The position numbers and the translations under genes were made by a program. The notes beneath the pieces are model-generated. The model was not told the origin of the DNA. It saw nothing but the letters and a program-made list of their open reading frames with translations, and did not search any database. Positions 14,667-55,000 of a stretch of DNA of 64,000 nucleotides are shown piece after piece. Origin of the DNA: Azolla caroliniana (taxonomy: Eukaryota > Plantae > Polypodiophyta); the NCBI GenBank assembly GCA_043228905.1, contig JBHGNT010000014.1, forward strand, positions 15,438,001 to 15,502,000, read 5' to 3'. Positions within the stretch are counted from its first letter, which is position 1. Every line of letters starts with the position of its first letter.

Positions 14667-15031
14667 TGTCAAGATTCGAACTCTTGACATGACCATGTTA
14701 TAATCAAGTATTATGGGTTAACCAACATATCTAATATACAGTTATGTATATAATTGGTCCTTGTTGTTTTGGCTAGCATCATGTGCATAGTTGCTCCCTT
14801 GTAGTATTTACACTTGGCACATGCATGCGTACGTACATGCTCTATTGTAGATTTACATGCGTGCAACAACTATGCATGCCGTGTAGTATAAATAGTTGAG
14901 TTCACCTAGTTGAGTTCACCATGAAGGAATTCAAGGCGAACAACATCGTCTATGGAGTCTTTCAGTTAATATTATTAATCCATTTGGTTATCTTCTTTCT
15001 TGTCTCTTGAGCTTATGATCTATTCGTGATA
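14667..15031 (+). repeat. 5' LTR of element A
   Basis: Direct repeat of 24952-25302; TGTCA...TGATA; private 14-bp duplication TAGTTGAGTTCACC. Confidence 0.93.
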
Positions 15032-15081
15032 GTTTGTTCACCTTCCCATCCTCATAGTTCTCCCTCTCATTAGCCATAACT

Positions 15082-16113
15082 ATGTCTGACTCAGCTAGTG
15101 ACTTAAGCCAGATAATCGTAGCCTTACAACAACTCCAGCTTGAAAATGAAGCTCTTCGAAATTCTTTACAAGAACTTCAAGTCGGTACCTCCCTATCCTC
15201 ACAACCCCTGAAGCCTAGTCTCCCACCCCAACCTAGCCTAGAGCCCGATCTTCTACCTACATTTGGCCTAGCTTCTTCGCATTTTCTTGAGCCTAAGGTT
15301 AGCCTCCCAGAAAAATTTGATGGAACGATGTCGCGTTTCCGAGGGTTCATCAACCAAATTCAACTTATCATTTGGCTACAACCTCAACGTTATGCAGATG
15401 CTCTTCGACAAGTCGGCCTTGTGGGCATCCTTCTCTCCGGTCCGGCCCAAGCTTGGTTTGCACCATTGGTAGAAACTTTGTCACCTCTATTGGAGGACTT
15501 TCCCGCCATCCTCGCCAAGTTAGAGGCCACATTTGGAGAGATGGACCAACGACGTACAACCCTTAACAAGCTTTATGCACTCGAACAAGGTTCGCTTGCA
15601 GCTTCTCTCTATGCTTCAGAATTTCGACAACTAGCATGCAACGTCAATTGGGATGATCAAGCTTTAGCTAATCACTTTCGGCGGGGCCTTCAAAGCAATG
15701 TCAAGAATATTCTCTTGAACTTTCGGGACCCCACCTCGTTATCCCAAGAGATTTCACAAGCAGTCCCTTGTGACAATCGTCTATTCAAATTTCGCCAAGA
15801 AGAGCGTTGGACTTGGGTTCCACCTCATTCACTTCCATGACATGCCCCAATTGTACAACCCTAGGTATCCCTCCCATCGACTGCGTCACACTCCCCTACT
15901 TTGGCAGATGCTCCCATTCCCATGGAAATTGATCAAGCCCGATTTCGGCCATTGATCGATGCCGAACGACAATTTCAGCGGGCTAATGGCTTGTGCCTAT
16001 ATTGTGGTGCCTCTGGTCATGTCGTTCACCATTGTCCTAGGAGTAATCGCCCACAATTCCATCCAGATAATGGACCCCAACATCCGGGAAACGACATCGT
16101 TCGGTTGAAGTAG
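15082..16113 (+). pseudogene. gag of element A (internal stop at 15838-15840)
   Basis: Retrotrans-gag motifs and CCHC knuckle; ends ...PGNDIVRLK*. Confidence 0.88.
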
Positions 16114-16138
16114 GAGCCATGCAGCTGGACATCTCCCA

Positions 16139-19100
16139 TGACAGGAACTGCACGCTCCCTATGCGCAACACTTGGCCACAACCGAGCTTAGAATCATACA
16201 CAGAAAACGGGAATGAATGCACGACACAAAGGAGAGAAGAGTACACAGGATGTTTAACGTGGAAAACCCTGAGAGGGAAAAACCACGGGAGTCCACAGAC
16301 TCCAAACTATCACTATATCACAATGATTAAAACAGTGAGCTCACGGAGGCAACAACCTCGTGCTCACGATCTTCGCCACAGGCGGCGGTTACAACAGAGG
16401 CAACGACCTCTCTCTCTCTCTCTGTACACAATTACACACACTCTCTTCTTGCACCAACAAGAATGATAACGACTCACACATAGAGTTTGCCCTAAGTCAT
16501 ATTTATACTAAAATGACTTTTCGGCTATTTACAAATATAGCCTCGATGGACTCTCAGAAACATATTTACGAATATGTCCTTTCATCTGGTGAGCACTTCT
16601 CATCGGGCCTTCACCATCCGGCTCTTGCCGGATACTCCTCATCCGGTTCTCACCGGGTCTTCCGTAGTTGGGTACTCCTCTTCCAGTTCTCATCGGGTCT
16701 TCCGTAGCCGGGTACTCCTCTTCCGGTTCTCACTGGGTCTTCCCATATGGAGGGACCTGTTTCCTAACAAACTTCCCCTTCACTCCGGCATGGGGTGTCT
16801 TACTAGTTCGATCCGCTTCCAGCATGCTTCCAGCTTGTCGGGTATAAGTACTTTGGTCAGCATATCTGACCCGTTCTCGGCCGTGTGGATCTTCGTCAGC
16901 GCGAACTCCTGGTCATCTACTCTTTCTCGGATCCAGTGATACCTACACTGGATATGCTTCGTCCGGGAATGGTAGGCCGCATTCTTAGCAAGGTGGATGA
17001 CACTTTGACTATCGCAATAGAGCCGGTATTCATCTTGCCGGATACCAAGCTCTCCGATGAAGTCCTTCATCCATAGTATTTCCTTGCCGGCTTCCACAAT
17101 TGCCATGTACTCCACCTCCGTGGTTGACAACGCAACCGTCTTCTGCAGCCTCGACTGCCACGAAACAACTCCCCCTGCATATGTCATTATATACCCGGAT
17201 GTTGACCAGCTGGTATCCACATCAGCCGACATGTCCGAATCGGTAAAACCGTCAAGTTGAGGTTTTCCGGAGCCGAATCGGAGACACATATTTGAAGTGC
17301 CTTTCAAGTACCGGAGTATCCATTTGACCGCGTTCCAGTGCTCCTTGCCGGGATTGCTCATAAACCGGCTCACCACTCCGACTGCGTATCCTATATCCGG
17401 TCGGTTACACACCATTGCGTACATTAAGCTCCCGACGACAGATGCATATGGAACCTTCATCATATCAACCTTCTCTGATTTCGGGCTTTGCTTACTGGAT
17501 AATCTGTAGTTTGCCGGGAGTGTCGATCTGACCGGTTTCGCTTCCAACATGTTGAACCGCTGAAGCACCTTTGTTACGTACTTCTCCTGTGACAGCCACA
17601 ATTGCTTCATTGGCCGGTTCTGGATGATATGCATCCCCAACATCTGTCTTGACGGACCCAAGTCTTTCATTGAGAAGGTCTGGTTGAGGGCCTTCTTCAG
17701 CATCCGTATTTTGGCTTGGTCCCGTCCAACGATCAACATGTTGTCCACGTACAGGAGGAGTATCATGAAGTCGCCTCCTTTGAACTTCTTCACAAACACG
17801 CAGTGATTGGCTTGCGTCTTGTGGTACCCTTGATCGGTCATGAAGGAGTCGAACTTCCAGTACCATTGCCGAGGGGCATGCTTCAACCTGTAGAGGCTCT
17901 TCTTCAACCGGCAAACCAGGTGCTCCTTCCCTTTCTTCACGAAACCTTCCGGTTGCTGCATGTAAATCTCCTCTTCGAGGTCACCGTGAAGGAATGCCGT
18001 CTTCACGTACAGCTGCTCTACCTCGAGGTCCATGCTTGCCGCTATACTCAACACCGTCCGGATGGAGGTCATCTTTAGTACCGAGGCAAATATCTCGTCG
18101 AAGTCCACGCCCTTCTTCTACTGGAACCCCTTCACCACGATCCTGGCTTTGTATCTCGGGGGGTTGCCGGCATCTCCCGGTTTCAACTTGTACACCCACT
18201 TGTTTCGGAGTGCCCGCTTTCCTTTTGGCAACTCCACCAATTCGTACGTATGGTTCTCATGCAGGGAATCCATCTCATCATGCATGGCACTTAACCATTT
18301 GCGACCGTGGGTGTTATCCTTCGCTTCTTCGAAGCTTTCTGGCTCCCCCTCATCGGTTAGCAGCACATGCTCTGCATCCAGAAATCTCCGGGGGGCCCTT
18401 CTCTCTCTGAGAGGATATCTTCGTCTTTGGGCTTCGGTAACCGGCTCCTCCATTTGCTCTTCATCCAAATCCGATTCGGGGTCTTGGCCGGTTCTGGTTT
18501 CAAATTCCTCTACTTCTTCTTCTGCCGGTTCGGTATCCTCACTGTAACCGGTTGGTTCCTTGAGTGCTAACCGGCCTCTTGCCGGTTGGGTCTGCTCATC
18601 GTAGAATCGATCCCTACCGGTCGACTCGGAGTTCATTATCTTCTTCTCCGACTCCCAGTCGGCGAGCATCTTGTCCTCCATGAAGATAATATCTCGACTC
18701 CGGAATACCTTCTTGTCGACCGGGTTCCACACTCGGTAGTCGAACTCATCGTCGCCGTAACCAAGGAATATGCATGGCCGGGTCTTTGGATCTAACTTTC
18801 CTCTCTGGTCCTTAGCTACATGCACGTATGCGAGACACCCGAACACCTTCAGATGCCAGTAGGACACTTCCTTACCGGTCCACACGTTCTGCGGCGTGTC
18901 TCCATCCAAGGGCACTGAGGGTGATATGTTTATCACATACGTCGTTGTCGACAACGCCTCAGCCCAAAACGTCTTGGGTAATTTTGCATGTGCCAACATA
19001 CTCTGGACCCTCTCCATTATGGTCCGGTTCATCCTCTCAGCCAGCCCGTTTAGTTCCGGCGTCTTCGGCACAGTAAATTCAAGCCGAATTCCCTTCGAGC

Positions 19101-21484
19101 GGTAGTACTCCTTGAACTGCCCCTGGTATTCTCCTCCGTTATCTGCTCGAACCGCCTTCAGCTTCCGGCGGGTTTCTCTTTCCACTCTCGCGTGGAGCTC
19201 TTTGAAGACGGATAGCACCTGATCCTTCGTCTTCAACGGTGTGGCCCACAGCTTCCGGCTGTGGTCATCTATGAATGTCACGAAGTAATGCGATCCTGCA
19301 TGTGACTTCGTGTCTACTTGACACATATCAGTATGCACCAGCTCTAGTGGTGCATTACGTCTCATCGGTGGCCTTGGTCGGAAGGAGGTCCGGTTTTGCT
19401 TACCGGCCAGACAATTAGTGCACTTCTCCAAGTGCACATTCTTCACTGGAATGAGGTTGTCGTCTGCAAGCCTCTTCATCCCCTTCTCGCTCATGTGACA
19501 CAACCTCTTGTGCCACAGCTCACCGGCAGTGTCGGATGCCACGTTCACTTCTTCCGGACATAACCGGGCATTCATCAGGTACAATGTGTTTACCTTCCGG
19601 GCCCGAGCCACAATCAGGCTCCTTTTACTGAACTTCATAACACCGTTCCAGATGCTACCCGTGTAGCCTTCACCATCTAGCCGACCGACTGATATCAGGT
19701 TCAGACGAACCTCCGGAACGTGTCAGACATCCTTCAGCAGCAGCTTGCATCTGGTTGGTGTTGTCAACCACACGTCTCCTATGCCGAGAATTCGGCATGT
19801 ACCTTCATTCCCCATCCGAACACAACCGTGATCACCGGCTGAGTAGGATGAGAAGCATTTTCGGTCCGGGATAAGGTGGAACGACGCTTCGGAGTCGACC
19901 ACCCAGGTCATCTCGTCGCCGGCAAGGTTTAGCTCACTCTCCTCGGTGATGAGCATCAACTCTTCTTCAATTGCCGCGATTGCCGTCGTTCCCTTCCGGT
20001 CCAGCCCCCTCCGATCTTTACCGTTCCGGTCCGGTGTCCGCTTCGAATCGGTATCGTCGGTTTCCTTGTCTTTTCGGAAATGCCGACAGTTCTTCTGGAA
20101 GTGTCCCGGCTTGCCGCAATAGAAGCAAGTAGGCCTCCCCCTTGACTTTGACCATGTCCCCGACTTTTCCCGGTTCTGGGGACTAGGGTTTCTTTGTCTT
20201 CTGCGTTCCGATTCGGTAAGGAGCGCTTTGGAATCGGAGCTTGTATCCTTATCTTTCCGACGCGCCTCCTCATCTAGCAAGCTCGACTTCACTCTTGCTA
20301 TGGATAACCGTTTCCCTTCCGGCCCGGTGTTGCCCAAAGTGATAACCAACGTCTCCCAGCTATCCGGGAGGGAACCGAGCAGGAGTAGCGCTAGTACCTC
20401 ATCGGCAAGAGGTACTTCCAATGATGTTGCCTGGTGGATCAGCCCCTGGAAGGCATTCATGTGCGCCGCCATGCTGGAGCCATCTTGGTACCAGAGTCTT
20501 ACTAGCTTTCGGAATACCGAAACCTGATTAACAACATTTTTGTTTTGAAACATAATGCCGATCTTCTCGCAAAGCTCATGAGCGTTGCTCTCTTCATTGA
20601 AGTTGTTGTATAGGCTCATGTCGATGAAGCACCGTATGTACGCCGTTGTCTTCATGTGCATCACCTCCCATATCGCGGCGTCGATCTTGTCCGGTCTCTT
20701 GTCCCCGAACTGAACCGGCAACCAAAGATCTTTAACCACGAGCATGTCCCTCATCTTCGACTTCCACACCGAATAGTTGGGGCCGGTGAGCTTGAACATA
20801 CCTCCCAACGAATCGTCCATTTTCTGTGTCGTTTCGCTCTGATACCACTTGACAGGAACTGCACGCTCCCTATGCGCAACACTCGGCCACAACCGAGCTT
20901 AGAATCATACACAGAAAACAGGAATGAATGCACGACACAAAGGAGAGAAGAGTACACAGGGCGTTTAACGTGGAAAACCCTGAGAGGGAAAAACCACGGG
21001 AGTCCACAGACTCCAAACTATCACTATATCACAATGATTAAAACAGTGAGCTCACAGAGGCAACGACCTCATGCTCACGATCTTCGCCACAGGCGGCGGT
21101 TACAACAGAGGCAACGACCTCTTTCTCTCTCTCTCTCTGTACACAATTACACACTCTCTCTTCTTGCACCAACAAGAATGATAACGACTCACACATAGAG
21201 TTTGCCCTAAGTCATATTTATACTAAAATGACTTTTCGGCTATTTACAAATATAGCCTCGATGGACTCTCAGAAACATATTTACGAATATGTCCCTTCAT
21301 CCGGTGAGCACTTCTCACCGGGCCTTCACCATCCGGCTCTTGCCGGATACTCCTCATCCGGTTCTCACTGGGTCTTCCGTAGTTGGGAACTCCTCTTCCG
21401 GTTCTCACCGGGTCTTCCGTAGCCGGGTACTCCTCTTCCGGTTCTCACCGGGTCTTCCCATCCAGAGGAACCTGTTTCCTAACA
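16139..21484 (-). mobile_element. Near-intact Ty1/copia element B (Tnt1-like) inserted at the gag/pol junction of element A
   Basis: LTRs 16139-16769 and 20850-21484 (TG...CA); TSD TCCCA/TCCCG; tRNA-iMet PBS TGGTATCAGAGC at 20847-20836; PPT GGAGTGAAGGGGAAG. Confidence 0.97.
16780..20820 (-). pseudogene. Copia gag-pol polyprotein, one frame, two premature stops
   Basis: ORFs 19723-20892, 18118-19638 and 16780-18108 are in the same frame. CCHC CFYCGKPGHFQKNC, WVVDSEAS, LWHKRLCH, RADNGGEY, LLYVDNML, HSRTKHI. Stops TGA (19723) and TAG (18118) fit CGA/CAG deamination. Confidence 0.93.
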
Positions 21485-24400
21485 TCCCGTCACCCACATT
21501 CTCTTGGTTCCATTACCGGATCGTCAGACAATTTCACATTGGAGGTATGGTTTTCGTTTAACTCTAGTTCCATTCAGTTTGTTGCTTTACTTGATTCTGG
21601 GGCATCTTCTTGCTTCATTGACATCACGTTCGCCCAAGCACATGGCGTACCTGTCATTTGCCTCTCAAAACCCATTCCCGTTGAAGCCATCGACGGGCGC
21701 GTCCTCTCGTCAAGTGCAATTAGTCAAGCTACGATCCCATTAGGGCTTCGTGTGGGGTCACACCAGGAGGAGCTCACCTTTTACCTCATTGCATCTCCTC
21801 GACATCTGATCGTCTTAGGACTAATGTGGTTGGAGGCGCACAATCCAATAGTGGATTGGTGCAACCGCTCAATCACATTTAGCGAGCCAAGATGCTCGCG
21901 AAAAACTATGAAGGTCAATTAAGTTTCCCATCCTTCGGAGAAGGTCGATTCCGACTCGGCCACCCCACCATCGGTCCAGGATGGGGTTGTTTGTGGCACC
22001 GTTTCTAACACACTCCATGTTATTACTGACAAATACCAACACTTCTTCGACGTATTTGAAAAATGTAATGCTCATTGTTTGCCCGAACACCGGTTGTACA
22101 ACTATCCGATTGATCTTCAAGAAGGTGTGTGTCCACCCTTTGGTCCTCTATATGCGTTGTTTGCACTAGAGTTGAAGGCCCTTCATGTGTATCTCGATAA
22201 GAACCTCGAGAAAGGATTTATTCAACCTTCTAAGTCGTCGATCGGGGCCCCCATTTTATTCGTGAAGAAGAAGGACGACTCTCTACGCTTATGCGTCGAC
22301 TACCGAGGTCTCAACAAACTCACTGTGTGCAATCACTATCCGCTACCTTTGATCCCCAAACTCCTTGATTGACTCCGAGTTGCGCGTGTCTTCTCCAAAG
22401 TTGATCTGCGTGGAGCGTGCAATCTAGTATGCATCAAGCCGGGGGATGAATGGAAAACCGCATTCCGAACACGGTATGGGTATTTCAAATACAAGATAAT
22501 GCCTTTTGGTCTTACTAACGCCGCAACAGTTTTTCAACATATGATGAACGATATATTCTGGGAATATCTCAATCATTTTGTTGTCATTTACCTTGATGAT
22601 ATTCTCATTTTCTCGCCAAACATGGAGGAGCACACTTGCCAAGTAGATTAGTTCTTGCCAAACTTCGCGAGCATGGCCTTTAGTTTGACCGTACCTTGAT
22701 CGAATTTCCGGGCTACATCATCTCGCCCACTGGCATCACCATGCATATGAAGAAGGTCTCTGTCATTCGGGTGTGGGTGACTCCAAGGCAACTTAAAGAT
22801 GTGCAATCCTTCCTCGGCTTCACGAATTTTTACCGTCGCTTCATCAAGGGGTTTTCCACCCTAGCACAACCTCTTATCGCCCTCACCCATAAAGGTATTC
22901 CTTTTTTATGGACCTCAGAGGCACAAAATGTGTTCGACTCACTCAAACATGCATTCATCATTGCCCTAGTGCTGCTACATGCCGACCCCACAAAACCCTT
23001 CCAAGTCAAAACTGATGCCTCTGACTTCGCCATTGGTGCCATCTTATCCCTTGCAGATGACACCAACCTAATGTACCTAGTGGCTTACTACTCCCGGAAA
23101 TTCACGGCCCCTGAAATCAATTATCCCATATATGACAAGGAGCTTGCTGCTATCATTGCTGCCTTTGAAGAATGGTGACCCTACTTGGCCGGCACACAAC
23201 ATCGTGTCCAAGTAGTGACTGATCATAAAAATTTAGTTTATTTTTCCACCGCTCGTACTTTGAATCGAAGGTAGGCCCGTTGGTCGACATTTCTCACTGA
23301 CTACGATTTTGAGATCGTATTTCAACCTGGTGGCCAACATGGGAAGGTCGATGCCCTTTCTCGTCGAGTTGATCTTGCACTCCGCCTTGGGGATGCTACT
23401 TATACTCAACAATCTAGACGTTTGCTGAAACCTGACCAATTGCATCTTTTTGCCACTTGTATGTTGTAGGAGGATTCATTACTCCAACAGATCACTGATG
23501 CATCCACGACCGATGCATTCGCTAACGTGATTCGAGATAGTTTGCAAAACCCCTCCAAGGTGACCAAAAGGAAGGATCTTGACACCTTCACCATACAAGA
23601 GGGTTTGCTATTCTGAGATCATCTCTTATACGTCCCAGAGGGCCCATATCGCACCCGAGTGTTGAAGGAATGCCACGATGACCCACTTGCAAGTCATTTC
23701 GGGGTCACATTAACCCTCGAGCTAATCTCTCGGGGGTATTGGTGGCCACAACCATGGAAGTTGGTCAAAGAATACATCAAGAGTTGTGAGGTTTGTGCTC
23801 GCTCCAAAGCCACTCATCATCGGCCATACGGCTTACTCCAGTCACTTCCATGCCCTTGTTGTCCCTGGGCCTCTCTATGGACCTAATAACTAATCTACCC
23901 TTGGTCAATAGCTATGACTTGGTGTTGGTCATTGTCGATCGGCTTACGAAGATGGCTCACTTCACTCCATGCCCCAAAACCATTTCCAGACAAGGAATGG
24001 TGCATCTACTACTAAACAATGTGGTACGCTTGCATGGACTCCCCGATGATGTCATCTTCGATTGCGGACCCCAATTTGTCTCTCACTTTTGGCAGTGCCT
24101 GCTACAAACTTTAGGCATTTCTGTCAAGTTGTCCTGTGCGTATCACCCCCAAACTGACGGGCAGACAGAGCGTCAACCAAATCCTTGAGTAGTATCTTCG
24201 GTGCTCGGTTAGTTACCAACAAGATGATTGAGTCAACTTACTTTCGCTCGCGGAATTCTCCTACAATAATTCTCTCCATGCATCGACTGGCGTCACTCCC
24301 TTCTTTGCAAACTATGGTTTACATCCTCGCTTTAACATTTCCCTTCCTACCACTTTTGTGAACCCTTCGGCGGAGGATCGCACATGCGTTTTAGAAGAGC

Positions 24401-24950
24401 TACATCATGATTTATCCTTGGGGCTTAGTCTCGCTAGTGAACGATACAAGAAGCAGGCTGATCACCATTGATTTGCCACTCCACACTTAGTCGTTGGAGA
24501 CATGGTCTGGTTGTTACGCCGACACATCTCTACTACTCGTCCATGTGTGAAACTTGATTACAAGAAGTTGGGCATTCCGTATCATCGAGTGCATCAATCT
24601 CGTCGCCTTCCGGCTCGCCCTTCCATCCCACTTCCGGATTCACGATGTTTTTCATGTCTCCTTCTTCGAACCCCATTATGCTTCGCAACTCCTAGGACAT
24701 CAAGCCCCACCACCACCACCTGTGCAATTGACGACAGGGGAGGAATACGAGGTCGACCAAATCCTTGACTCGTGTTGGCACCGTCGACACTTGCAATACC
24801 TTGTATTGTGGAGGGGTTACCCCATGTCTAACGCCATGTGGGAACCATCAGAAAATTTACAAAATGCCCCAAAGGTGGTCCAAGATTTTCATCACCGATA
24901 TCCTCACAAACAGGTGGCCGATTTGGGAAGGCAATGTAGGATGGGGGATA
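21485..24950 (+). pseudogene. pol of element A (PR-RT-RH-IN-chromodomain), multiple stops and frameshifts
   Basis: Domain motifs in ORF fragments 21383-21922, 22079-22372, 22696-23178, 23659-24188 and 24554-24988. Confidence 0.9.
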
Positions 24951-24951
24951 A

Positions 24952-25302
24952 TGTCAAGATTCAAACGCTTGACATGGCCATGTTATAATCAAGTATTATG
25001 GGTTAACCAACATATCTAGTATACAATTATGTATACAATTGGTTCTTGTTGTTTTGGCTAGCATCATGTGCATAGTTGCTCCCTTGTAGTATTTGCACTT
25101 GGCACATGCATGCGTACCTACATGCTCTATTGTAGATTCACATGCGTGCAACAAGTATGCATGTCGTGTAGTATCAATAGTTGAGTTCACCTTGAAAGAA
25201 TTCAAGGTGAACAACACCAGTTATGGAGTCTTTCAGTTAATACTATTAATCCATTTGGTTATCTTCTTTCTTGTTTCTTGAGCTTATGATCTATCCGTGA
25301 CA
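24952..25302 (+). repeat. 3' LTR of element A
   Basis: TGTCA...TGACA, preceded by PPT. Confidence 0.93.
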
Positions 25303-36299: not shown

Positions 36300-39200
36300 G
36301 AAGAGATAACATAGTAGTTACTAATTATAAATTAAGAGAGAGAGAGAGAGAGTGAGAGATTAGGGAGGAGATTCCACACTAATTATTAATTAAAAATTAA
36401 AAGAGAGAGAGGAGAAGAGAGGGAGATTAAGGAGGAGATTACAAACTATTGACTTAATTAAAAATTACAAGAGAGGGAGAGAGACTAAGGAGAGATTACA
36501 TACTAATTACTTAGTTAAAAATGGTCAGGAATAGTACTAAGACAGAGAAGGAATTAGTACTAAAAGAAGTATTAGTACTAAGAGAGATGAAGAACTCTCA
36601 AGAGAAGGAAAGAGTGAGTGACAGGGAGGGAGGGAGGGAGGGAGAGAGAGTGATGATAAGAAAAGATATATATTATGTGAAGAGAATGTAAAGTAGTAGG
36701 TAGGAGGCTTAAGATTGGCGTTGAACCGATTTGGTTCGAAATAATGCCTTGTGCCTCCTTTTATAATGTTCTAAGGAATACTCCTGAAGTTTCTAGAATG
36801 TTCCAGAGAAATCTGGAATATTCATCAATTTTCTATAATAAAACATAAATAAAAATAATATTCTACACATTATAATGTATGGTCTAATGGTCAAGAGCTC
36901 GACCCATGTAGCATAAGGTCATGGGTTCGAGTCTTGCCATATCATGACATTATCCCCTTTTTAAAACGATGAGTGTCACGAGTCATTTTGGATTGAGGAC
37001 CTGGTTTGTCTGGATATTGACGATGGAAGTCTTCAAGAAGAGCACGAGCATTGGTCACATTCTCTATCAGTTACCAAGTACGCTCGTTGGGACTATATCC
37101 TAGCCAATCGACTAGATAGTAGAGCTTGTTGCGAACAATCTTGGAATCAAGGATGGCGGCAATCTCGTACTTAGGTCCATCTTCAAGCTCGATCTGGGGT
37201 GGAGGCTGTGTAATACGTCCTAGGATGGTGTTCTCTTGATAGGGTTCGAGGAGAGAACTATGAAACACCGGATGTATCCGAAGTTGCGGAGGTAGATCGA
37301 GACAAAAAGCGACATCATTAATCTTTCCTATAATATGGAAAGGACCTAATCACTGATAATCCAACTTCTCGCATGGGCGAGTAGTCTTGATGTGTCGTCG
37401 TAGTAGCCACACCTGATCTCCAATGTTAAAACTGGATGGAAGTCGATGACGATCCGCATAAACCTTGTGTGTTTGTTGAACTTGTTGGAGATGAGTAGAT
37501 AAATCGGCTTGTATCTTGCGTAACCGCTTTAAACGATCCTCTGCGCAAGGATTTGTGGACAACTCTGGGGTTTCAAATACACACTACCGGGGGTGAGAAC
37601 CCGTATAAGCATAAAATGGCGTAACTTTAGTCGATGCGTGGATAGAGTTATTGTAGGCAAATTCGGCGAAGTGGAGAATATCTACCCAGTCATCTTGATG
37701 ATAGCTTAGAAAGCACCAAAGATACTGCTCCAGTGTTTGATTTGTTCGTTCTACTTGGCCATCCGTTTGTGGGTGGTAGCCGGAGGAGAGGTTACACATG
37801 ACCTTGAGCATTTTAAAAAGGTGCTTCCAGAATTTCGATACGAACTAGGGTCCACGGTCGCTGATGATACTATCGGGAAGGCCATGATGTCGACATACTT
37901 CACGCATGACAATTTCAGCGGTTTCTTCACTGGATATTTCCTTAGTACATGGCAAGAAATGAGCCATCTTCGTATATCGATCTACGACTGTTAGAATCGC
38001 ATTAAACCCCTTAGAGTCTGGAAGATCTGTGATGAAGTCTAGAGCAATGGATTGCCACGACTTGCTTGGAATTGGTAATGGTTCTAATAAACCATATGGA
38101 TGATGCCTTGGCATTTTTGCTCTGCAACATGTATCACAAGTCCGGACAAAATCTTCAACAAATTGTTGCATACGGGGCCACCAAAATGATCGTTGTACTA
38201 AATCTAATGTTTTAGTACTACCTAAATGCCTAGTTGTATAAGTGTCATGAAAGTTTTGGACTACTCGAAGGCGGAAAGAACCATTAGGAACATACAAGAG
38301 TTCATTAAAGAATAGTAATCCATCATGGTATTTGAATTGCCAATAGTCCGTACCTGGTGGTTGTGACTGTGAACAAGATGCTCGAGAGGGATCGATTTGT
38401 GCTAGAATGACTTGGGCGAAAGCATCGGTCTTCAAGTCCTCATGTATAGTATCGATAACGTGGGAATCCATTGGCATGCCAAAGACCTGTGTTGCTTGCA
38501 GTCGTGTCGGTCCCAAGATTACTTGCTTTTGGTTATCAAAAGCTAGCTCGCCGGGACGCGGTGCTAGGTACAAACGCTGTGATAATGCATCTGCCTTCCC
38601 TTGGTGCTTCCCCGGACGATATGTAATTTTGAAGTCGAAACGCATGAGGAAGTGGGCCCACCGAGCTTGATGTCGATTTAACACACGAGCGTCCTGAAAG
38701 TAGGCAAGGTTTTTGTGGTCACTGAATACGGTGACTTGATGAGAGGATCCCTCTAGAAAATGCCTCCATTGCGTAAAAGAGTCCACTATTGCCAATAGCT
38801 CCTTATCATGAATTTTGTAGTTGATTTCGGCGGCGTCAAACTTGCGTGAGTGAAAAGCCACAGGATGTAGCTTCTCATCATTACCCTGTTGTGACAGAAT
38901 GCTCCCCAATGCGAAATCCGATGCGTCTGCTTCGATAATGAATGGTTTTTCTGGATTGACATGAGCTAGAATTGGAGCCGATGTAAATGCCTTTTTAAGA
39001 CTTTCGAAAGCCATGGCTGCTTCTTTAGACCAAACAAACGATTGTCCCTTCCTGGTAAGTTGTGTGAGAGGCAAAATGAGCTTTGAGTAATCCTATATGA
39101 ACTTCCGGTAAAAATTGGCAAAGCCTAAAAAGCATTGCACATCTCTCACCGAACGCGGAGTCTGCCACTCTACCACAATTTTGACCTTAGCTTGGTCCAT

Positions 39201-42200
39201 GGAGATGCCTTTCGAGGAAATGAAATAGCCCAGAAATTCCACCTGGTTGCACCCAAAACTACATTTTTCCAGCTTTGCATAAAGACCATGTTCTCGAAGT
39301 CATTTTAGTACTAACAGTACATGAGAATCATGCTCTTCTTGGGTCTTCGAATAAACCAGTAGATCATCCAAATAGATGATCAAACAAACATCCAAGAGAT
39401 CTCGGAATATATCATTTGCCATGTGCTGGAAGACTGCTAGCGCATTAGTGAGGCCGAACGACATGACTGTATACTCGAAGTGCCCATATCTGGTGCGAAA
39501 CGCGGTCTTCCATTCATCTCCTGGTCGGATCTGTACGAGGTTATAGGCTCCCGTAAGTCGATCTTCGTGAAGAACTTGGCACCATTGATCCATTCTAAAA
39601 GACTTGAGATAAGGGGAAGTGCATACCTATTTCTGATTGTCACCTTATTCAAGCCACGGTAATCTACAACGAGACGAAGTGATCCATCCTTTTTCTTGGC
39701 GAAGAAAATGGGTGCGCCGGCTGGAGATTTCGAATGCCGAATGAAACCATTTTCCAAATTCTCCTTTATATAGGCTCGCAGGACTTCTAGCTCGGTTGGT
39801 GACAAATTGTAGATCGGTACCCATGGTGGCTCTTTCCCCGGTTGTAAATCGATGGGGCAATCATACGGTCGATGGTGAGGAAGCGTATTGGCTTGTACTT
39901 TATCGAACACATCGGCATAATGATGATACTTCTTTGGAAGTTGAACAATGAACTCCTCTTTAATAGTGTCTGAGGGCTTTACTGATATTGCGAAGATGAA
40001 ACATTTCTTCCTTGTGTCCTTCTTCCCACAACTGATGTAGCGAAATGGTTGCAATCTCATGAGTAGACCCTCGGGCTTTTCGATACCGGATTTCTCTTGT
40101 TCTCCAATCTCTGTCTGGGTTATGTAATTCGAACCATGGTAATCCTAAAACAATGGGGTATTCTGGGATGCTAATTATATTAAATGATACTACACATGCT
40201 AGATTATCTAGGACAATATTAACGGACTCTGACTCTTCTAAGATATTTCCGGAAGCAATGGGACGACCATCAATGACTACTACAGAGGCTGGACACGGGA
40301 GTTTTCTGAGTTATATTTGATGAGCTTGGGCAAAGTTCCTATCCATGAAGCAAGAATTAGCTTCGGAATCTAGAAGTGCTAAGACATGTACTGGAGGGGT
40401 ACTTTTAGTGCTAACTGTTACTTGGGCTACAAACACATTGCTAACTTGCATAGAGAGAATGGAACCACTAATGGGCTGCACAGATCTAGGGTTGGCCAAC
40501 CAAACGGCTCCTATTTTGGTTGGACTTAGTCGTTTAACTCTTCTTCTAACTGACTAAGGACATCAAATTTGTTCACTAGATTTGGGCTATTAGTACTATT
40601 AGGACTATCAGATATCCCTACTGAAATAGACTCGGGTTTAGTACAATTAGAACTAGCAACTATTTGGTTTACCTGCCTTCTCGGCCTATGGGGATAGTTT
40701 ACCATGATATGCCCTGGTCCACCACAATAAAGACATAGTCAGTTTGCTCGGCATCATTGCTTTTCTTCTTCCGATTGCGGTCCATGACGACGTGTGGTGT
40801 CAATTTCCACCACGACGGTCACCTTGGCGTAATCGCCGGATTTTGTTGATTGCAGTCCTTATGCTGTTAGTATCTCCAAAACAGGCCTTAAACTCACTTA
40901 TAAATTCTTCAAAACTGTTTAGTAATGGAGATTCCTTTTCCAACAATGGAGCAAACCATGCTAACGTTGAGCCACTAAGGAGAGTGCCTACTAGTTCCAC
41001 TCGTGATGCATCGGTGGGATATCGAGAAGGATGCATTTGTATCACTAAACGTACCTGATTCAAAAACCCTCTAAACTGTGATCAGGTCCCATCAAATTTT
41101 GCAGGAAGACCGATCTTGGGTTCTTTGTGAATCCCTTGAGTGCTTGATCCTTGTTGTTGTAATGATACGATAATCGCTTCGAGTTGTTGTACACGTAACG
41201 TCAACTCCCCATGTTGTTGTTGTTTTTCCAACGCTATTTGTTGAAGATCCCCCAACAAACGATGATTTTCTTGTTCTAGTGCTACAAATTTCTCTTTTAA
41301 GCACTGGAGCTCCGAGAAAACAGATTGGTATTCCTGAGCGCTAACAGTTTCCATTTTACTAGCGAGGATAAGAGGATTAATAAGAAGATAAAAGGAAGTG
41401 GAGGAAAGGAAGATACGGAAGGAAGAACGAGCAAAATCGGTTCAAACTGTCAGGAATAGTACTAAGACAGAGAAGGAATTAGTACTAAAAGAAGTATTAG
41501 TACTAAGAGAGGTGAAGAACTCTCGAGAGAAGGAAAGAGTGAGTGACAGGGAGGGAGGGAGAGAGAGAGTGATGATAAGAAAAGATATATATTATGTGAA
41601 GAGAATGTACAGTAGTAGCTAGGAGGCTTAAGATTGGCGTTGAACCGATTTGGTTCGAAATAATGCCTTGTGCCTCCTTTTATAGTGTTCTGAGGAATAC
41701 TCCTGAAGTTTCTAGAATGTTCCAGAGAAATCTGGAATATTCATCAATTTTCTATAATAAAACAATATTCTACATATTACAATGTATGGTCTAATGGTCA
41801 AGAGCTTGACCCATGTAGCATAAGGTCATGGGTTCGAGTCTTGCCATATCATGACAAAAATTAAAGAGAGAGAGAGATACATTAAGGAGGAGATTAAATA
41901 GTAATTAGTATTTAAAATTTAAGAGAGAGAGAGAGAGATTAAGAAGAAGATTGCATACTAATTACTAATTAAAAATAAAATAGAGAGAGATTACAAACTA
42001 ATTACTAATTAAAAATCAAAAGAGAGAGATTAAGGATGAGATTACATATTAATTACTAATTAAAAATTAAAAGAGAGAGAGAGAGAGAGAGAGAGTCATT
42101 AAGGAGGTGATTAAAACTAATTACTAATTAAAATTTAAAAGAGAGAGACATTAAGGAGGAGATTACAAACTAATTACTAATTAAAATTTAAAAGAGAGAG

Positions 42201-42440: not shown

Positions 42441-42644
42441 AGACGTGTAGTTATCATTAGAAATGGAAAATTACATGGGGTGGGGGATGGGGGCATGGTC
42501 AAATGCAATGGGCAAACTAGTTTCGCTCCTAAGGGCTCAATAGGTCATAACTAATATGTATGGGTTGAATGATGCTAGTGATTGTTTTGAATTGATGGCA
42601 TGATCTTTTCTTACATGTTCCATTTCTTCTTATTCAACATAATT

Positions 42645-46888: not shown

Positions 46889-49849
46889 AACAGGAGCATG
46901 ATCAAAGAAAACTATGCATGGCATAATCTTGATATTCCCCCCATTTAACACAAAGGCCTCCCCCACATAAAATCTATCAAATCTTGAGAGATTGGTTCCA
47001 CCAATTCTCCTATCAAAACGTGAGAAACACAAGGAATCCTGAGATCTATTGGCATTAGGCATATGCCATGCATCCAAAATACTCAATCTCAAACACATCC
47101 GTTCCTAGACTGGTAGTTCCTCCCGATGAATTGTTGCCACACTCCCTCCTTTCCTATCACCCGGGTCCTCAAGCATGTTAAAATCCCTTGCAACACACCA
47201 ATGAGACACGTTCAGTAATGCATTTGTAATTTCACACCAAAAGTGTTTCCTAGCTAATGCATGATTTGGCGCCTTGTGTACCACTAGTGCCAATAACATG
47301 GGACCAAAACATCTCCCAACTACCATGCAATATAATGCCATAGTTCCTTATTCGTTGCTCATTCAAATGATGTTCTTGAAACATCATAATATCCAACGAC
47401 CCATTGTAAGACACTTTTGTAATGCTTGTCTTAACCTGCCTCTATATCTTCGGTACAAGGGGCCTCCCAAGCCCTAAACATTCCACGTGAGGAGCCGCAT
47501 TAACAACTGCTAGAGACCGAACTAGACCCAAGCCTACGAGTCTTAGAGGATGGTTCCATGGAGCTTATGCTCCCTTCCCCCCCATGTTCACCATTTGGCC
47601 TTTGAGCATGTCACAACCTTCTTTAATGAAACGTCAATGATGATGGACCTGAGCCTTGGCTTGGGTTTCCAATACCTCATCTTCATGAATATAAACGTAC
47701 CCAAAATCAAACAATACGTCTGAAGGTACACCCAATACAACATGCTTGCAGTTCATTGCATCCAAATATGAAACCACTGAACAACTTGCATTCTCTAATC
47801 CTGTCAATAGTGCTTACCCAATTGGTTTTGCACATATTTGGCAAAATGCAAAACTTGTTCTCTCATGGCCAATATAGCATCCGGGTGATTCCATACATTT
47901 TTCTCATAACCACATAATGGAAAGGAATAACCGACAAATGGGCTTCCCAATTGCTTTTGTCTAAATAGAACATCTACCCTTATTGCAATGGGCTCATGAA
48001 CAACCTTAACACCCAAATGTTTTGTAAAATCATGTCCAAAGGGGGCTGCATAATCAAGTATCGAAAAAACACCACTTCTAGTATCCTCTTTCAACATCCC
48101 ACATGTTCTTATCATGACCGCATTATCCAATTTTCGTGAACGTAATGTTCTTTTCGAAGCAAATGTTCTAGTTACAGACCCATCATTTGGTTGGATGGTA
48201 CCAACATTTTTCTCCCTTATCTCAATAGTGGGTGTTGGTTGTTCTTGCACATCAACTTCTATGTTCAACACATTGTACACATTAGGGGTGAGACATTGTA
48301 CGTGTCTTGCACCCATGCTTAGCCTTTATAGTCGTCCATTGATTGTCTCTTGTTTCCCCTTGAGCCCTTACACCCATACAATCTGAGGCTAATTTCTCTT
48401 GGCAATTATCTACCTCATGCCCCTCTTGTTTACAATACTCGCAACAACGTTTTTTCCCCCCAATTTAGCATCTTGGCTAAGTGTCCTATTTGTCGACAAT
48501 AGAAACATTGTCCAAGGAGTCCGGTAAACCCCACCTTCTGTTTGATAAAATCTACTTCTTCATTTGGTAGCATTATCTTTACAAGTAAGTTTTCGAGTGA
48601 TCCTACCAAGATTCGTGCCGACGGAAAACTTGACATTTTAGTTATTCACGTAGCCATACTTTCTCGAACCTTCGCGTAGCCATACTTTATTAGCTATCGC
48701 ACCAAGCATCGGTAAATACTCCCAGGAAGACAATCGTTAACGGAAATATCCGATCTCCTTTCCATATTGCCTCCACAAGATTAAAACATTGTTTCCAAGG
48801 CATCACAAATGCACGGGAACCTCTTACATCCAAAGGACTATGCTCCAACATCATGCCCATCGACTCGATTGTATCCAATTCCACACGATAAAATCCTCTC
48901 CCCATAAAATGGACATCCGTTATCCTACCAATTAATCCATGCATAGAGGCTTGTAAGAGATCTTTGCACTCACCTTTATTCAGCCGAGATCCCACACTTT
49001 GCAGATCACAAAGAGTTGGGTTAGACGATGAACCTCTGACCTGAATTCAGCCTCCTCTTCGGGCGAGAATACGATCGACAGAGGCCGCTCCTCAAAATCT
49101 GTTAGCATGGATGCTTCTTTAGAGTTCCCCTGTTGTGTCATTGAGGTGGTTCTCTGCTGCGCTCTCTCTCTTCCCTGTTCCTCCATCTCGTGACATATAT
49201 CTTCAATTGTAAAGAAGGGAGACATATGTGAAAGGGAAGTGTAACACATCAACTTTCTGGCAAGAGATAGTTTATGTAAATTCTTACAATGCATAGCCAA
49301 GTAGAGAAGAGTTAAGTCACCATAACTCTCAACACATTTCCAATTTAGATTTCCCCAAAATTTAGCACATGCATGCGCTTTCTCTTGGGTTTGGAGAAAT
49401 TGTTGATTAACTTCCCATATTCTTCTATTTCTTTGAATAAGACTTCTGTAGTCATACAAATGCTTTTGGTAATTTTCTTTATCCTTAACTACATTCAAAA
49501 TCATAAGGCGCTTTCGAGCTTCATGACATTCTTTATCAAACCATTTTTTCTTTGGACTACATTTCTTAGTGCATTTCCAAGATGTTTGCTTGGTTGAAAA
49601 ACATTTGTTTGTGCATGAGAGAATGACTTTCTTAAAAGCTTCCCATATGCATTCTAGTGTGGCACCATGTTGTATCTTTGTCATTTGTAACATATCCTCA
49701 ACCATCTTGGAATACATGGGCGTTCACTTAAGGTTCATGCTCAACTACGGTTGTTTATTATCGTCAATGGCCTTGTCACAATCAAACCTATACATACATT
49801 TGAGGTCAATAGATAAAGCTCTATGATCGGATTCTGGTGTCCATACACC

Positions 49850-52088
49850 TATGACGACACTCGTGACATAAAATATACAGTTGTTGAGGGTTGAACCTAC
49901 AACCTCACTTCAACAAGACATCATGATCAACCATTTGGATATGAGCATGTATTTATATATAATGTTAGTTTAGTATTATATATTCTAGCATACAATACAA
50001 TCTAGAATATTTTAGTCTTTAGTATATTCTAGAAATATTCTATGGTGTATTCTAGAAGGCTATATTCTCGAGATATTTTTTGGGTATGTTCTAGAGATGT
50101 TTCTCGAGTATGTTCAAGACATATTCAATCTCAGAACTTTTATAAATACTTGTAATCTCCTTGGTTCCTTTCAAGGGATTCAATACTAGTCATTGACACA
50201 TCAATCTAGTATTCTCGTTTCATCTCATCTTTGTCTCCTTGATCTTTATTTCTGTCTTCATACCCTCATGTCTCTCACAACATCTAAGTTCCTAGCCTTG
50301 TCACATCTAGCTCCAAGTTCATCCGTCGCTCGTAGCCCCACCATTTGTGCTCCATCCTAGTCCACGCTTGGTGTGTCCGTGATAGTTTGAATCCCTTCCA
50401 ACTGGAAGCACGGTTTTGGTGAGGAGTGCTTTCGATCGCTCACCTTCCTAGTTCCGGTGGGGGTCACAACCGGTAACTTCCTGGTGGGGATTGGATCATT
50501 GCTTGCTTGCACTGCATTTTCATTATAGTTCAAGTCTCGCGCCACTTTCTGTTGGCGAGGACCGATTTCAATCGCTCACCTTCTAGTTTCGGTGGGGGTC
50601 ACAACCGCTCACTTTCCTGGTGGGGATCGCGTGGGTTTCTCGCTAGCTCCACCATTTGTGTTGTGTCGTGGGCCAATCATAATAGAAGAAGTCTAGTCAA
50701 CCGCTTCACTTGCATTCCTTCGCGTGTTGTTGTTCCAGTTCTCGGTGAGGGCCGCATGGTCGCTCACTCCCGTTCGTGTTCCAGTTCATGGTGCAAATTG
50801 CAAGGTCGCTCACTTCCTTTCGTGTTCTAGTTCCCAGTGAGGATTGCATGGTCGCTCACATCGTTTGGTGTTCCACTTCCCGGTGAGGACCATACATGGT
50901 CGCTCACATCTGTTGGTGTTTGTGTCTTCAGTGAGGACCTCACATGGTCAATCACGTCCGTTGGTGCTCTGCTACCCACTCACCCCTACACCACGCATTC
51001 GAAAAGGTGGCCGTACAGGAGAGGATAATGTCACGACACTCGTGACATAAAATATATAGTTGTTGAGGGTTGAACCTACAACCTCACTTCAACAAGACAT
51101 CATGCTCAACCATTTGGATATGAGCATCTATTTATATATAATAGTAGTTTAGTATTATATATTCTAGCATACAATACAGTCCAGAATATTCTAATCTTTA
51201 GTATATTCTAGAAATATTCTATGGTGTATTCTAAATGGGTATATTCTAGAGATATTTGTTGGGTATGTTCTTGAAGAGAATAGCGTGGAATATTGCTTGG
51301 CCACAACCGAGTCTTGAATCACTTCAATGAGAATGAAACACAAAAATGGGAAGTAGAGAGTACATAGAATGTTTACGTGGAAAACCCTAATGGGAAAAAC
51401 CACGGGAGCCCACAGACTCCAAGCTATCACTATATATAGGAAAGATACAATCAGAGACTTGTAGGCAACAACCTTGAGCTCTGTATCTTCGCCAACCGGC
51501 GGTTACAACAAAGTATAACTCTGTATCTCCTCTCTCTCTATACAACAGTTATATCAACAACAATATGACAACAACCTTATAAAGTGATTGCCCTAAGTCA
51601 TATTTATACTTAATATATGAACTTAGGGCTATTTACAAATATAGTCTCAATAGGCTTACTCAAAACATATTTACAAATAAATATGTCTTCTCTTCTGGTT
51701 CTCACCGGGTCCATCCGATTTGGTTTCCGGTTCTCACCAAGTCCTCTTCATTCATAACCGGATCCCATCCGGAGGGAACGACTTCCCAACAATTCTAGAG
51801 ATATTTCTTGAGTATATTCTAGACATATTCAATCTCAGAACTTGTATAAATACTTGTAACCTCCTTGGTTCCTTTCAAGGGATTCAACACCAATCATTGA
51901 CACATCAATCTAGTATTCTCGTTTCGCCTCATCTTTGTCTCCTTGATCTTTATTTCTGTCTTGATGCCCTCATGTCCCTCACAACATCTAGAGTTCCTAG
52001 CCTCGTCACATCTAGCTCCAAGTTCATCCGTCGCTCGTAGCCCCATTATCTGTGCTCCGTCCTAGTTTGCGCTTGGTGTGTTCGTGAC
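49850..52088 (+). mobile_element. Non-coding non-autonomous LTR retrotransposon E (TRIM/LARD-like)
   Basis: LTRs 49850-50384 and 51029-52088 (latter split by a solo LTR); 644-bp internal region without retroelement ORFs; PPT AGGAGAGGATAA; right TSD damaged. Confidence 0.88.
51272..51791 (-). mobile_element. Copia-type solo LTR
   Basis: TG...CA termini; TSD GTTCT/ATTCT; shares ACGTGGAAAACCCT, AAAAACCACGGGAG and TTGCCCTAAGTCATATTTATACT with element B LTRs. Confidence 0.88.
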
Positions 52089-55000
52089 CAAGTGAGAATT
52101 TATGTATACGATCCAAAATACCTTTGGAAAGTAGCACATAGTCAATCACACTATTTCCATTGTGTTTTCTACATGTAAAACCATTACTGTTGGGCCATAA
52201 GGAAACACCATTTGCAATAAGAAATCCAGTACTATTGCACATTCAGGAATAACTTCCCAAATTGGTCTGGATCTTTTTCATCACTAGAAAAGCGACTATA
52301 CATTTGTATATCCTCTTGCATCCTTACGATATGTGGCATGAAAGATTGTTGTGTATCAAGTTGGAAATTTCTTGTACGAGCATTCGTGCCAAGGTTGGTG
52401 GAGGTGTAGAATGTTCGAACGAGGAGAAGGCTTCAACTTCTCACTCGATGGTCAAAATCATGATCCGAAAATTCTATTTCAATCTTTGAGGCAAAATCTT
52501 CATGTTGTCACAATAAGGTTTCCGAGATGGCTATCCTACTTTTGTCTTTCGTTGATTGAGCTCCAAAATCACGTAACTTTGCGCCCTGAGATAAAATTTC
52601 TGAGTCTAAAAGTCTAGTGCATTCCTTATTTGATTGTGATTAGTTTCAGATAGAAGATTTACAAGAAATAATTGAATATAGATTTCAAATTTACAAAATA
52701 CACTGAAATAGATACAAGTGAGATTATCTCAACCTCTTTACATGAAATAGCTTGAAAAGGGAATAAATAAAGAAAATAGAGATATAAGATTTGAAGTTAA
52801 AGGTTCAGAGGCATATATTTGAGTTTTGGTTTAGTGGACCAATGAGATGGCTTCATTGCCTCTTGTCATTGGGTCTTGAATGCCCTCTTGAATCGCTACT
52901 CCAAGCTTCTTCGAAATTTTGGCAGTGTATCCACCTTGATCTAAAATTCAACCCTTTGCAATGAGCTCTCCTCTCCCTTTTATAGTCATGAGGAGCACCT
53001 CATGGAAGTAAAAAGAAGTACATTCCTATTTCAACATGCACCTCACTTTTTGATCTCGCGTGGACTCCTTTTCCTCGTGTACTCAATGTGAGGAAAATGC
53101 CTATTTCTATGTCCATCCATTCACATCACTCTCATTAATCTCTTCAATATATACTTGATGTCTCATAGTTTGAATTCAAGACTCAAACCCTTCGCCTTTT
53201 CGTTTCTACAGTAACCACTTGATGATTGAGCTATATCTTGTTACTGTTATTGTTTTACCTTTAATGATCTTTTTATAGTATTCTTGAATCTTATATATCT
53301 ATAATTTAGCTCATTTCCTCATGTGCGCTCCCCATATCAAGACAATGTGGTATCACAAGATAAATATATGAACCAAATACAACCCCACAAGAGAGAAAGC
53401 CTTCGATTTCTACTGACCAACAAGTCCAAGACCTCGTCATACTTCCATAAAGAGGTTTGTGTTACAGTTGCGAGCGATGTCATATTGTCTCAAAATGTGT
53501 CGAAAAGGAGAAGAAATTAGGGTAAATTTGTTGTCCATTGTCTCTTCTAAAGTTGGTCTCCATGTGGTCAATCAAGGCCAATGCATAGCACATAAACACT
53601 AACATGAGAAACAAGACTTATGCTTTGGTAAGTGAAAGCAAAAAACATCGATGGTGCAACCCAAAATTTTAAAACAAGAAACTTATGAGGTCAACATCCC
53701 CCTCTAACTACATATGTTGTCTGCACACTCTTTTCTAGTATGGGGTGTATAACCATGTTTGAAGTTGGCAAGAAAGAGTTTCCGGCCACTTTGCGCAAAA
53801 ATCATCAAGGGTCTTGAACCTTGTATAAAGCTTCTCTTCACAATTTTCCCTCAATGACCAAATACACCTAAATTTTAATGTCCATTTTGGTAAGAGTCTC
53901 TTTGTACACCTTCAAACGTATGAGGGTGATATATCACTCCAAATAAAAATATCAAACCAATCAACAACACATGTAAAAAGTTGGTTGGTGTCCTCTTCTT
54001 TTTGACACCTTTGCTCTCTTTGGGTGTGTTTAGGTTAGGCTTTGCATACTTGGGATCTCTAAGGGTTTTGGTTTTGGTCAAAGGCTATTTCTTACTCAAG
54101 TGTTCTTATAATGCTCAAGTCAAGGAACAACATCAACATAATGCTATAAAAGCAAGGCTAATATAATAAACATTAACATAATGCTAGAAAAAGGAAGGAT
54201 TAACAATATCTCTAATCATTCACAAACTCAATTCCATAATTCAATTTCCCTCTATTCTCAATTTCAATCTCTATATGAACAAAAATTTAGAATACACAAT
54301 ATGGATTTTCAATGTGTTTGTTTGTGAAGGTAGTTCCATTAGCACTCAAAATCTATGACATGATATTCATATACTTTTGATTGTGCTTGTTATTAATGTA
54401 AAAACTTTATGTACTTTGAATGTGCTTGTTATTGATCCAAAGTAAATTTCATATTCTACTAATTCTGCTTCTTGTTTATGCAAAACCTACTAATTATCCT
54501 TGTAAGTATAAAATATAGTAGTTTGGCTTGCTTGTAAATAAACATGTAGTTGATGCCATATATTATTTTTATCATTATACTTATGGATACAACATAGTTG
54601 TATATCCACTTCAAGTCTTCATAACCAATTATGTTAAAAGTTTAGCCTTCGATAATGATATGTACATATTCAAAACTTTCAATTTATATACTTATATAAA
54701 TATTTTCAAGCTACAAACACATGTGCATACAATTCGCATGACACATTTCATGTGCATCCTTTTGAGTTATAATTGACATAGCAAAACAAACCTAGTGTGG
54801 TCTAAACTTTTGATGTGTTAGCCTCTAAATAGCTCAACACCATGTGTGTTGATCACGCATCAACGAATTATGTGGTGGTGAATGGGATATTAATTTTCTA
54901 ATGTCTGTCAAACAAGCTACAAGGGAGTTTCCAATTGAATGGATATGCACACATATACATCCTTTGCTAATTGTACAAGAATCTCCTCACCATACACTCA

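Follow-up and report, generated by a model that had tools for sequence, protein, structure and literature searches.

The 64,000-nucleotide stretch of Azolla caroliniana DNA analyzed here (the window; contig JBHGNT010000014.1) contains a non-coding long terminal repeat (LTR) retrotransposon at positions 49850-52089. This element, referred to as the focal element, is probably (rough probability 0.8) a member of a Tf1-like, self-priming, non-autonomous family that parasitizes Tcn1-like chromoviruses of the type of element A, which lies in the same window. The anatomy of the element, the complementarity between its LTR and its primer-binding site (PBS) together with the covariation of the two, the copy number of the family, the lack of genes, and the modules in common with an A-like chromovirus were observed directly. 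Self-priming has been proven in the fission yeast element Tf1 (PMC7175516). There, the RNA's initial 11 bases pair with a PBS just past the 5' LTR, and RNase H cuts the RNA between bases 11 and 12 (PMC7175516, PMC4600332).

The PBS of the focal element, TTGAATCCCTT at 50387-50397, is the exact reverse complement, at 11 of 11 positions, of AAGGGATTCAA, which is found in both LTRs at 50173-50183 and 51877-51887. The pair has no other exact occurrence in the window. An earlier reading of this DNA made from the letters and open reading frames (ORFs) alone, here the sequence-only reading, had described this complementarity two bases past the LTR and the placement of the LTR 11-mer 32 nt past TATAAAT (50141), and both descriptions are correct. 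Across the window, an 11-mer with its reverse complement 20-540 nt upstream occurs at ~0.06% of positions; the expectation by chance at the six positions right after the LTR, with the TATA spacing not yet counted, is ~0.4%. Because the position after the LTR and the distance from the TATA box are both fixed, chance is a negligible explanation for the focal pair.

The RNA fold of the focal element was computed on 50173-50430, from the predicted transcription start. In the minimum-energy structure, nt 2-11 are predicted to pair with the PBS. Ten of the 11 pairs have probabilities of 0.82-0.99, and the terminal A-U pair has one of 0.14. The predicted stem is extended by ~18 further pairs between R12-33, in the repeat (R) part of the LTR, and the last bases of the unique 5' part (U5). 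This extended stem recalls the extended structure needed by Tf1. A structured interior or packaging signal in the focal RNA was considered and rejected, since the fold of the interior is no better than that of shuffled sequences (z = -0.34).

A host tRNA or tRNA fragment could instead prime the minus strand, the match to the LTR being incidental. The PBS strand resembles a tRNA T-arm in its sense strand (GTTTGAATCCC against GGTTCGAATCC). With the likeness in this orientation, annealing of a tRNA to the site would not be possible. The sequence after the focal LTR opens with TTG rather than the TGG of a tRNA-type PBS. ARAGORN found no tRNA in the window, Rfam gave no match in 49700-52200 at E<=1, and the earlier statement that the element has no tRNA PBS agrees with these results. 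The two chromoviruses of the window, A and B, bear on the same alternative.

In chromovirus A, the self-primer AAGG(C/T)GAACAA is located at 14933-14943 and 25204-25214. It reads AAGGTGAACAA in the 3' LTR, where it lies 32 nt past a TATA-like box, and AAGGCGAACAA in the 5' LTR, a CpG/TpG difference. The LTR of A ends with GTGA(C/T)A and is followed by GT and by the PBS TTGTTCACCTT at 15034-15044. In chromovirus B, the self-primer AAATCGGTTCAA (41651-41640) lies 33 nt past TATAAAA and is present in both LTRs; the LTR ends with CTGACA and is followed by GT and the PBS TTGAACCGATTT at 41445-41434. The layout common to A and B is composed of an LTR end TGACA, a GT spacer, a PBS that starts with TTG, and a primer 32-33 nt past the TATA box at a C|A step. 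All three primers, including that of the focal element, are preceded by C. Primer positions 3-8 differ among the focal element, A, and B, and the PBS matches each change (6 of the 11 pairs). A host tRNA would hardly explain the pairing, because six of the 11 pairs have changed on both sides. In the predicted fold of B, ten internal primer-PBS pairs have probabilities of 0.9-1.0, and in that of A with the CpG mutation reverted, eight internal pairs have probabilities of 0.95-1.0. With the T variant, the fold of A, like that of B, brings the 5' end and the PBS into pairing. Three families with three different PBSs, each matching its own LTR, make priming by a tRNA very unlikely.

Element A encodes Pfam domains for gag, protease (PR), RNase H (RH), and integrase (IN), and its chromodomain matches the full Chromo model at 2.6e-15. 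This chromodomain (EEYEV...YLVLWRGY) keeps the aromatic cage residues Y..W..Y and is of the classical, group I type. For the RNase H-integrase ORF of B, the named matches among the top 120 are fungal, vertebrate, and one mislabelled bacterial metagenome-assembled genome, with no seed plant among them. The Atlas clusters nearest to this ORF are from Basidiomycota and Chordata. A and B likely belong with the Tf1/sushi-related Tcn1 clade, an assignment that rests on the chromodomain type and the nearest relatives.

The LTR tips of these chromoviruses have a feature of their own. The first ~80 nt of the A LTR (14667-14750; TGTCAAGATTCGAACTCTTGACA...) hold an antisense T-arm-like hairpin. This region is 75-82% identical in many non-coding copies (L027:73-151, L007:1784-1862) in which the other part of U3, the unique 3' part of the LTR, differs. 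The focal element has a different U3 tip, and Rfam finds no tRNA at that place. The U3 tip of B (41856-41780, minus strand) resembles an antisense tRNA. Element A also contains a nested Ty1/copia element at about 16139-21423 on the minus strand, with RVT_2, rve, and gag_pre-integrase domains and its own LTRs, which are 97% identical.

The two LTRs of the focal element align as the direct repeats 49854-50095/51033-51274 (94%), 50089-50286/51793-51990 (93%), and 50287-50382/51992-52087 (91%). Their global alignment of 535 positions has 92.3% identity, 29 transitions, and 12 transversions, for a Kimura two-parameter (K2P) distance of 0.082. At the usual plant substitution rates, this divergence would correspond to several million years. 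Between the LTRs lie 644 bp, made up of the GT spacer, the PBS, and a 631-bp interior whose longest ORF is 107 aa; no Pfam match was found for this ORF. The interior is mostly repeats, with two of ~135 bp (50416-50627) and five to six tandem units of 46-48 bp (50709-50990). Near its end is AGGTGGCCG at 51005-51013, and the interior closes with AGGTGGCCG...AGGAGAGGATAA followed by the TGTCA of the 3' LTR. In the window, AGGTGGCCG is found only at 24912, in element A, and at 51005; the latter is what is left of a chromoviral pol gene's 3' end. The sequence GGATAATGTCA is located exactly at the junctions of polypurine tract (PPT) and LTR in A, in B (minus strand), and in the focal element. The sequence-only reading had described the 644-bp interior as non-coding with a PPT, here AGGAGAGGATAA abutting the 3' LTR, and had matched the motif ahead of the PPT and the GGATAA-TGTCA junction to element A. 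Each of these points was confirmed, and the junction is found in B as well. The features of the focal element, its flanks, and the two chromoviruses are listed in Table 1.

Table 1. Positions in the 64-kb window of the focal element, its insertion site, and chromoviruses A and B (TSD, target-site duplication; LINE, long interspersed nuclear element).
Feature	Position	Strand	Remarks
Focal 5' LTR	49850..50384	+	535 bp; begins TATGACG (3' LTR: TGTCACG), ends CGTGATA
Focal TATAAAT box	50141..50147	+	32 nt 5' of the predicted first transcribed base
Predicted self-primer AAGGGATTCAA	50173..50183	+	putative transcript nt 1-11; preceding C gives a C|A initiator
GT spacer, LTR end to PBS	50385..50386	+	identical in elements A and B
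PBS TTGAATCCCTT	50387..50397	+	exact complement of the self-primer
Focal non-coding interior	50398..51028	+	631 bp; no Pfam match, tandem repeats
Polypurine tract AGGAGAGGATAA	51017..51028	+	directly adjoins 3' LTR; GGATAA|TGTCA junction
Focal 3' LTR	51029..52089	+	interrupted; self-primer copy at 51877-51887; ends GTGACC
Copia-type solo LTR inside focal 3' LTR	51272..51791	-	520 bp, TG...CA; flanks GTTCT/ATTCT; later insertion
Left flank, 5'-truncated LINE-like endonuclease frame (..GVWTPESDHRALSIDL..)	49610..49849	-	
Right flank, same LINE-like frame (..IDYVLLSKGILDRIHKFSLG)	52090..52385	-	weak Exo_endo_phos matches
Chromovirus A, candidate helper type	14667..25302	+	gag, PR, RH, IN, classical chromodomain; TSD GTCTG/GTCTA
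Chromovirus B	36523..41856	-	perfect TSD ATTTT/ATTTT

The focal element interrupts a LINE-like frame. The two halves of this frame (..IDYVLLSKGILDRIHKFSLG | VWTPESDHRALSIDL..) rejoin in frame without the element, and many sequencing-run contigs connect 49846 straight to 52087; these come from paralogous LINE copies that lack it. Because the LINE halves join in frame and the paralogues are uninterrupted, the focal element is a discrete insertion. The Ty1/copia element nested in A has LTRs with 71-72% identity to the copia-type solo LTR within the focal 3' LTR. The LTR tips of the focal element are damaged, with TATG instead of TGTC at the start and GTGACC instead of GTGACA at the end, and ACC (3 nt) is all that remains of the target duplication. 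The sequence-only reading had described neither this damage nor the solo LTR. The ACC would agree with a 5-bp TSD, ACACC, if one deletion had removed 5 bp at the 3' end, which is a conjecture. The divergence of its LTRs (7.7%), the damage at its termini, the reduction of its TSD to ACC, and the insertion within its 3' LTR mark the focal copy as an old, dead element.

The focal element is a member of a common, multi-copy, non-coding family. Among the contigs of four DNA sequencing runs from two species, thousands of pieces matched 49300-52700. The focal interior is covered in each of the three larger runs by ~40-70 distinct contigs, and joints within these interior contigs gain or lose 46-bp units. 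Public metagenome contigs were scanned with a pattern of the LTR end plus the PBS, which yielded 36 loci. Six of them (L004, L008, L022, L036, L037, L038) have no other likeness to the focal element and were set aside as chance pattern matches. The other 30 carry the R-U5 part of the LTR at 72-92% identity to the focal element, plus both kinds of interior repeat. The family interior, with its 135-bp and 46-bp repeats, adjoins the same PBS in ~25 independent contigs. In the contigs checked that lack the family interior at this place (L006, L021, L025, L033), no chromoviral genes follow the PBS; L006 has only a copia gag ~1 kb away from it. The exact primer is present in 18 of the 23 loci with sufficient upstream sequence. 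Among 16 distinct promoter variants, the TATA spacing is 32 nt and the C|A initiator is kept in all 16 and the primer is exact in 14, and the length of U5 among the family variants ranges from 46 to 240 nt.

These copies also bear on the origin of the focal element. It could have arisen once, when a full chromovirus at this locus lost its internal part by deletion, and the ~25 nt of the pol 3' end kept before the PPT would suit such an event. Against this, the same interior adjoins the same PBS in ~25 independent contigs, and every sequencing run has dozens of contigs with it, leaving this origin extremely improbable. The element is not a single-copy deletion derivative, an outcome that would have spoken against the sequence-only reading, since its interior recurs in many independent contigs. 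That reading had also called for copies with independent TSDs. The multiple copies are there (30 contigs and dozens per run), but no matching TSD was found at L018, the only contig whose flanks were compared.

A link to an A-type helper is provided by the contig L005. Its tail ahead of the LTR is 74% identical to the last 97 nt ahead of the 3' LTR of A, and its U3 is 80.6% identical to the U3 of A. L005 carries the A primer AAGGTGAACAA 32 nt past TATAAAT, the family U5, the A PBS TTGTTCACCTT, and the family interior. Both halves of a second primer type are thus present on the family background, a compensatory change. In sequence, L005 appears to be a sign of recombination with an A-like chromovirus. 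The sequence-only reading had proposed a non-autonomous parasite of self-priming chromoviruses and had asked for compensatory changes between R and PBS. The proposal is supported by the common design of A and B and by the A-like U3, primer, PBS, and pre-PPT tail of L005. Compensatory changes are seen in the six pairs that differ among the focal element, A, and B and in the A-type primer and PBS of L005, an unphased short-read contig.

Several observations weigh against a self-priming parasite family. The contig L029 combines a focal-type primer, AAGGGATTCAA, with an A-type PBS, a mismatched pair. Its segment L029:2666-2880 equals L005:1324-1538, so that an identical stretch of R12-U5, A-type PBS, and interior stands behind different promoters and primers. 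The subfamilies have ~190 nt of identical U5 in common, and because of this identity the phase of primer and PBS cannot be read from short-read contigs. Of L005 and L029, one or both must be a true recombinant or an assembly chimera. The related contigs as a whole are short-read metagenome assemblies. Within the focal subfamily, 4 of 11 primer sites vary compared with 9 of 32 core-promoter sites, with all four in two decayed copies, and the primer is not clearly better conserved than the core promoter. No autonomous element with a focal-type U3 or LTR was found in the window or in the related contigs; such a partner had been called for in the sequence-only reading. Finally, the focal copy itself is unable to be active.

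Some of these points would suit a passive relic. The family would then have arisen by deletion from a self-priming chromovirus and spread by segmental duplication or with another primer, the 11-mer pair being unused. The focal copy is dead and has no clean TSD, and the primer is only modestly more conserved than the adjoining promoter. However, a family that has diversified in LTR identity (72-92%), U5 length (46-240 nt), and repeat number keeps the exact primer, the PBS, and the 32-nt spacing. The A-type primer and PBS are found on the same family background, on both sides, and the LINE into which the focal copy inserted as a discrete unit has uninterrupted paralogues. A passive relic is improbable in view of this evidence, and a self-priming parasite of Tcn1-like chromoviruses is the preferred reading.

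If L029 is a recombinant, its mismatch is as expected from strand transfer between co-packaged RNAs. A further set of contigs has a different irregularity at the PBS. In 4 of the 30 contigs, from two subfamilies (L009:1567-1650; L010:1006-1290; L011 at ~231-249 and L034 at ~294-312, both minus strand), the sequence right after the PBS 11-mer is promoter-proximal U3 in reverse complement (..GTGAYA GT TTGAATCCCTT GAAAGGGACC..GTATTTATA). The LTR is flipped exactly at the 11-mer, since the reverse-complemented U3 directly follows it. Beyond the flipped part, L010 has a reverse-complemented interior, an arrangement compatible with an inversion between the two 11-bp inverted repeats, and L034 resembles a palindrome centered in U5. 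An assembly artefact is unlikely, because an 11-bp overlap is too short. The flipped LTRs may come from an accident of reverse transcription or from a rearrangement of DNA.

A tentative idea, which we regard as unlikely though worth stating, starts from the primer, whose sequence would be copied anew into the PBS at every round. A parasite without genes could in this way adopt the primer type of any co-packaged helper and so leave a natural record of primer/PBS matching. L005 would be a completed switch, L029 a mismatched intermediate, and the four flipped contigs fossils of mis-priming.

The preferred reading implies the following cycle. Transcription would begin at the A of AAGGGATTCAA, 32 nt past the TATA box. 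The first 11 nt would fold back on the PBS two bases beyond U5, and in the focal element this pairing would be lengthened by the ~18 predicted pairs between R12-33 and the U5 end. The RNase H of a helper would cleave after nt 11, and the freed 3' end would be extended through U5. The remaining steps would be those of the usual LTR cycle, with the PPT and the TGTCA...TGACA termini in common with the helper. The proteins would come in trans from Tf1/sushi-type (Tcn1-like) chromoviruses such as A. We infer the start site, the cleavage, and the mobilization in trans.

The focal element resembles the fission yeast elements Tf1, Tf2, and Tj1 in a pairing of 11-12 nt, in the PBS 2 nt past the LTR, and in a predicted fold that reaches R/U5. 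It differs from Tf1, which is autonomous and experimentally proven, in that it has no genes, resides in a land plant, and is known here from its sequence. In plants, self-priming has been predicted for 83% of 1,500 Tcn1-clade chromoviruses by Neumann et al. in 2019 (PMC6317226). According to them, it is used by none of the other groups of plant chromoviruses, and their Tcn1 clade came only from mosses and club-mosses (PMC6317226). Self-priming is likewise predicted for the TAR lineage of plants. Novikova et al. did not detect Tcn1 in ferns by polymerase chain reaction (PMC2864245), and among the plant elements of Novikov et al. the group I chromodomain was confined to Tcn1-like ones, algal ones, and some from Selaginella (PMC3350952). 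A and B resemble the Tcn1 clade of REXdb in their 5-bp TSDs, group I chromodomain, predicted self-priming, and fungal and vertebrate Tf1/sushi relatives. At ~5.3 kb, they are slightly shorter than the range of the clade, 5.5-9.4 kb (PMC6317226). Compared with this clade, the focal element is a gene-less derivative. Gene-less elements fall outside the Tcn1 survey, because the survey was built on polyprotein domains.

TRIMs (terminal-repeat retrotransposons in miniature) and LARDs (large retrotransposon derivatives) are non-coding elements that keep LTRs, PBS, and PPT, depend on the proteins of a partner, and have cis modules in common with it, as in the Dasheng/RIRE2 pair. The described TRIMs have LTRs of ~100-250 bp, a tRNA-type PBS (usually for tRNA-Met), and a total length under ~1.5 kb, and the interiors of LARDs are several kb long. 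The focal element differs from TRIMs in its 535-bp LTRs, its length of ~1.7 kb without the solo LTR, and its self-complementary PBS. It differs from LARDs in that its interior is 644 bp rather than multi-kb. Among open-access descriptions, none of a self-priming non-autonomous LTR element and none of Tcn1-type elements in ferns were found.

The likely use of self-priming by an element without proteins is a modest novelty, as the mechanism itself was already known, and retention of the helper's primer system by a parasite is expected. The sequence-only reading overstated the surprise of the element, because self-priming was already predicted for plant Tcn1 elements and a parasite must keep the cis signals of its helper. 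The family is nevertheless informative. It indicates that a large gene-less family can live on a minimal cis set, composed of the LTR ends, a primer of 11 nt where the transcript would begin, a PBS that matches it, and a PPT. Its natural compensatory variation supports the Tf1 mechanism in a land plant. The results also suggest that Tf1/sushi-type chromoviruses, together with their parasites, abound in a lineage (probably ferns) in which published surveys missed the clade. LTR annotation pipelines that demand a tRNA-type PBS will miss or misclassify such families.

Other parts of the window contain further 11-mers with a reverse complement up to 540 nt upstream, at 45650-45660/45287-45297, 33153-33163/33025-33035, and 47062-47073/46914-46925. 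These lie near the LTR pairs 31662/45030 (98% identical) and 31329/34201 (97%), and they may be further self-priming signatures in nested elements around B. Three ORFs in a row, of 174, 322, and 230 aa, are located at 42600-44763 on the plus strand, in the space from B to the 45030 LTR copy. The 322- and 230-aa ORFs have no Pfam match, and the 174-aa ORF has a C17orf113-type zinc finger. The host is a streptophyte, and two of its genes fit a non-flowering vascular plant, probably a fern. At 3220-4890 on the minus strand, a conserved MATH-domain exon with a 556-aa ORF has 82% identity to a protein of the conifer Cryptomeria and 65-78% to most homologues from angiosperms. The domain matches of an ORF with a NIF domain are mostly fungal, and its best plant match is from the fern Adiantum.

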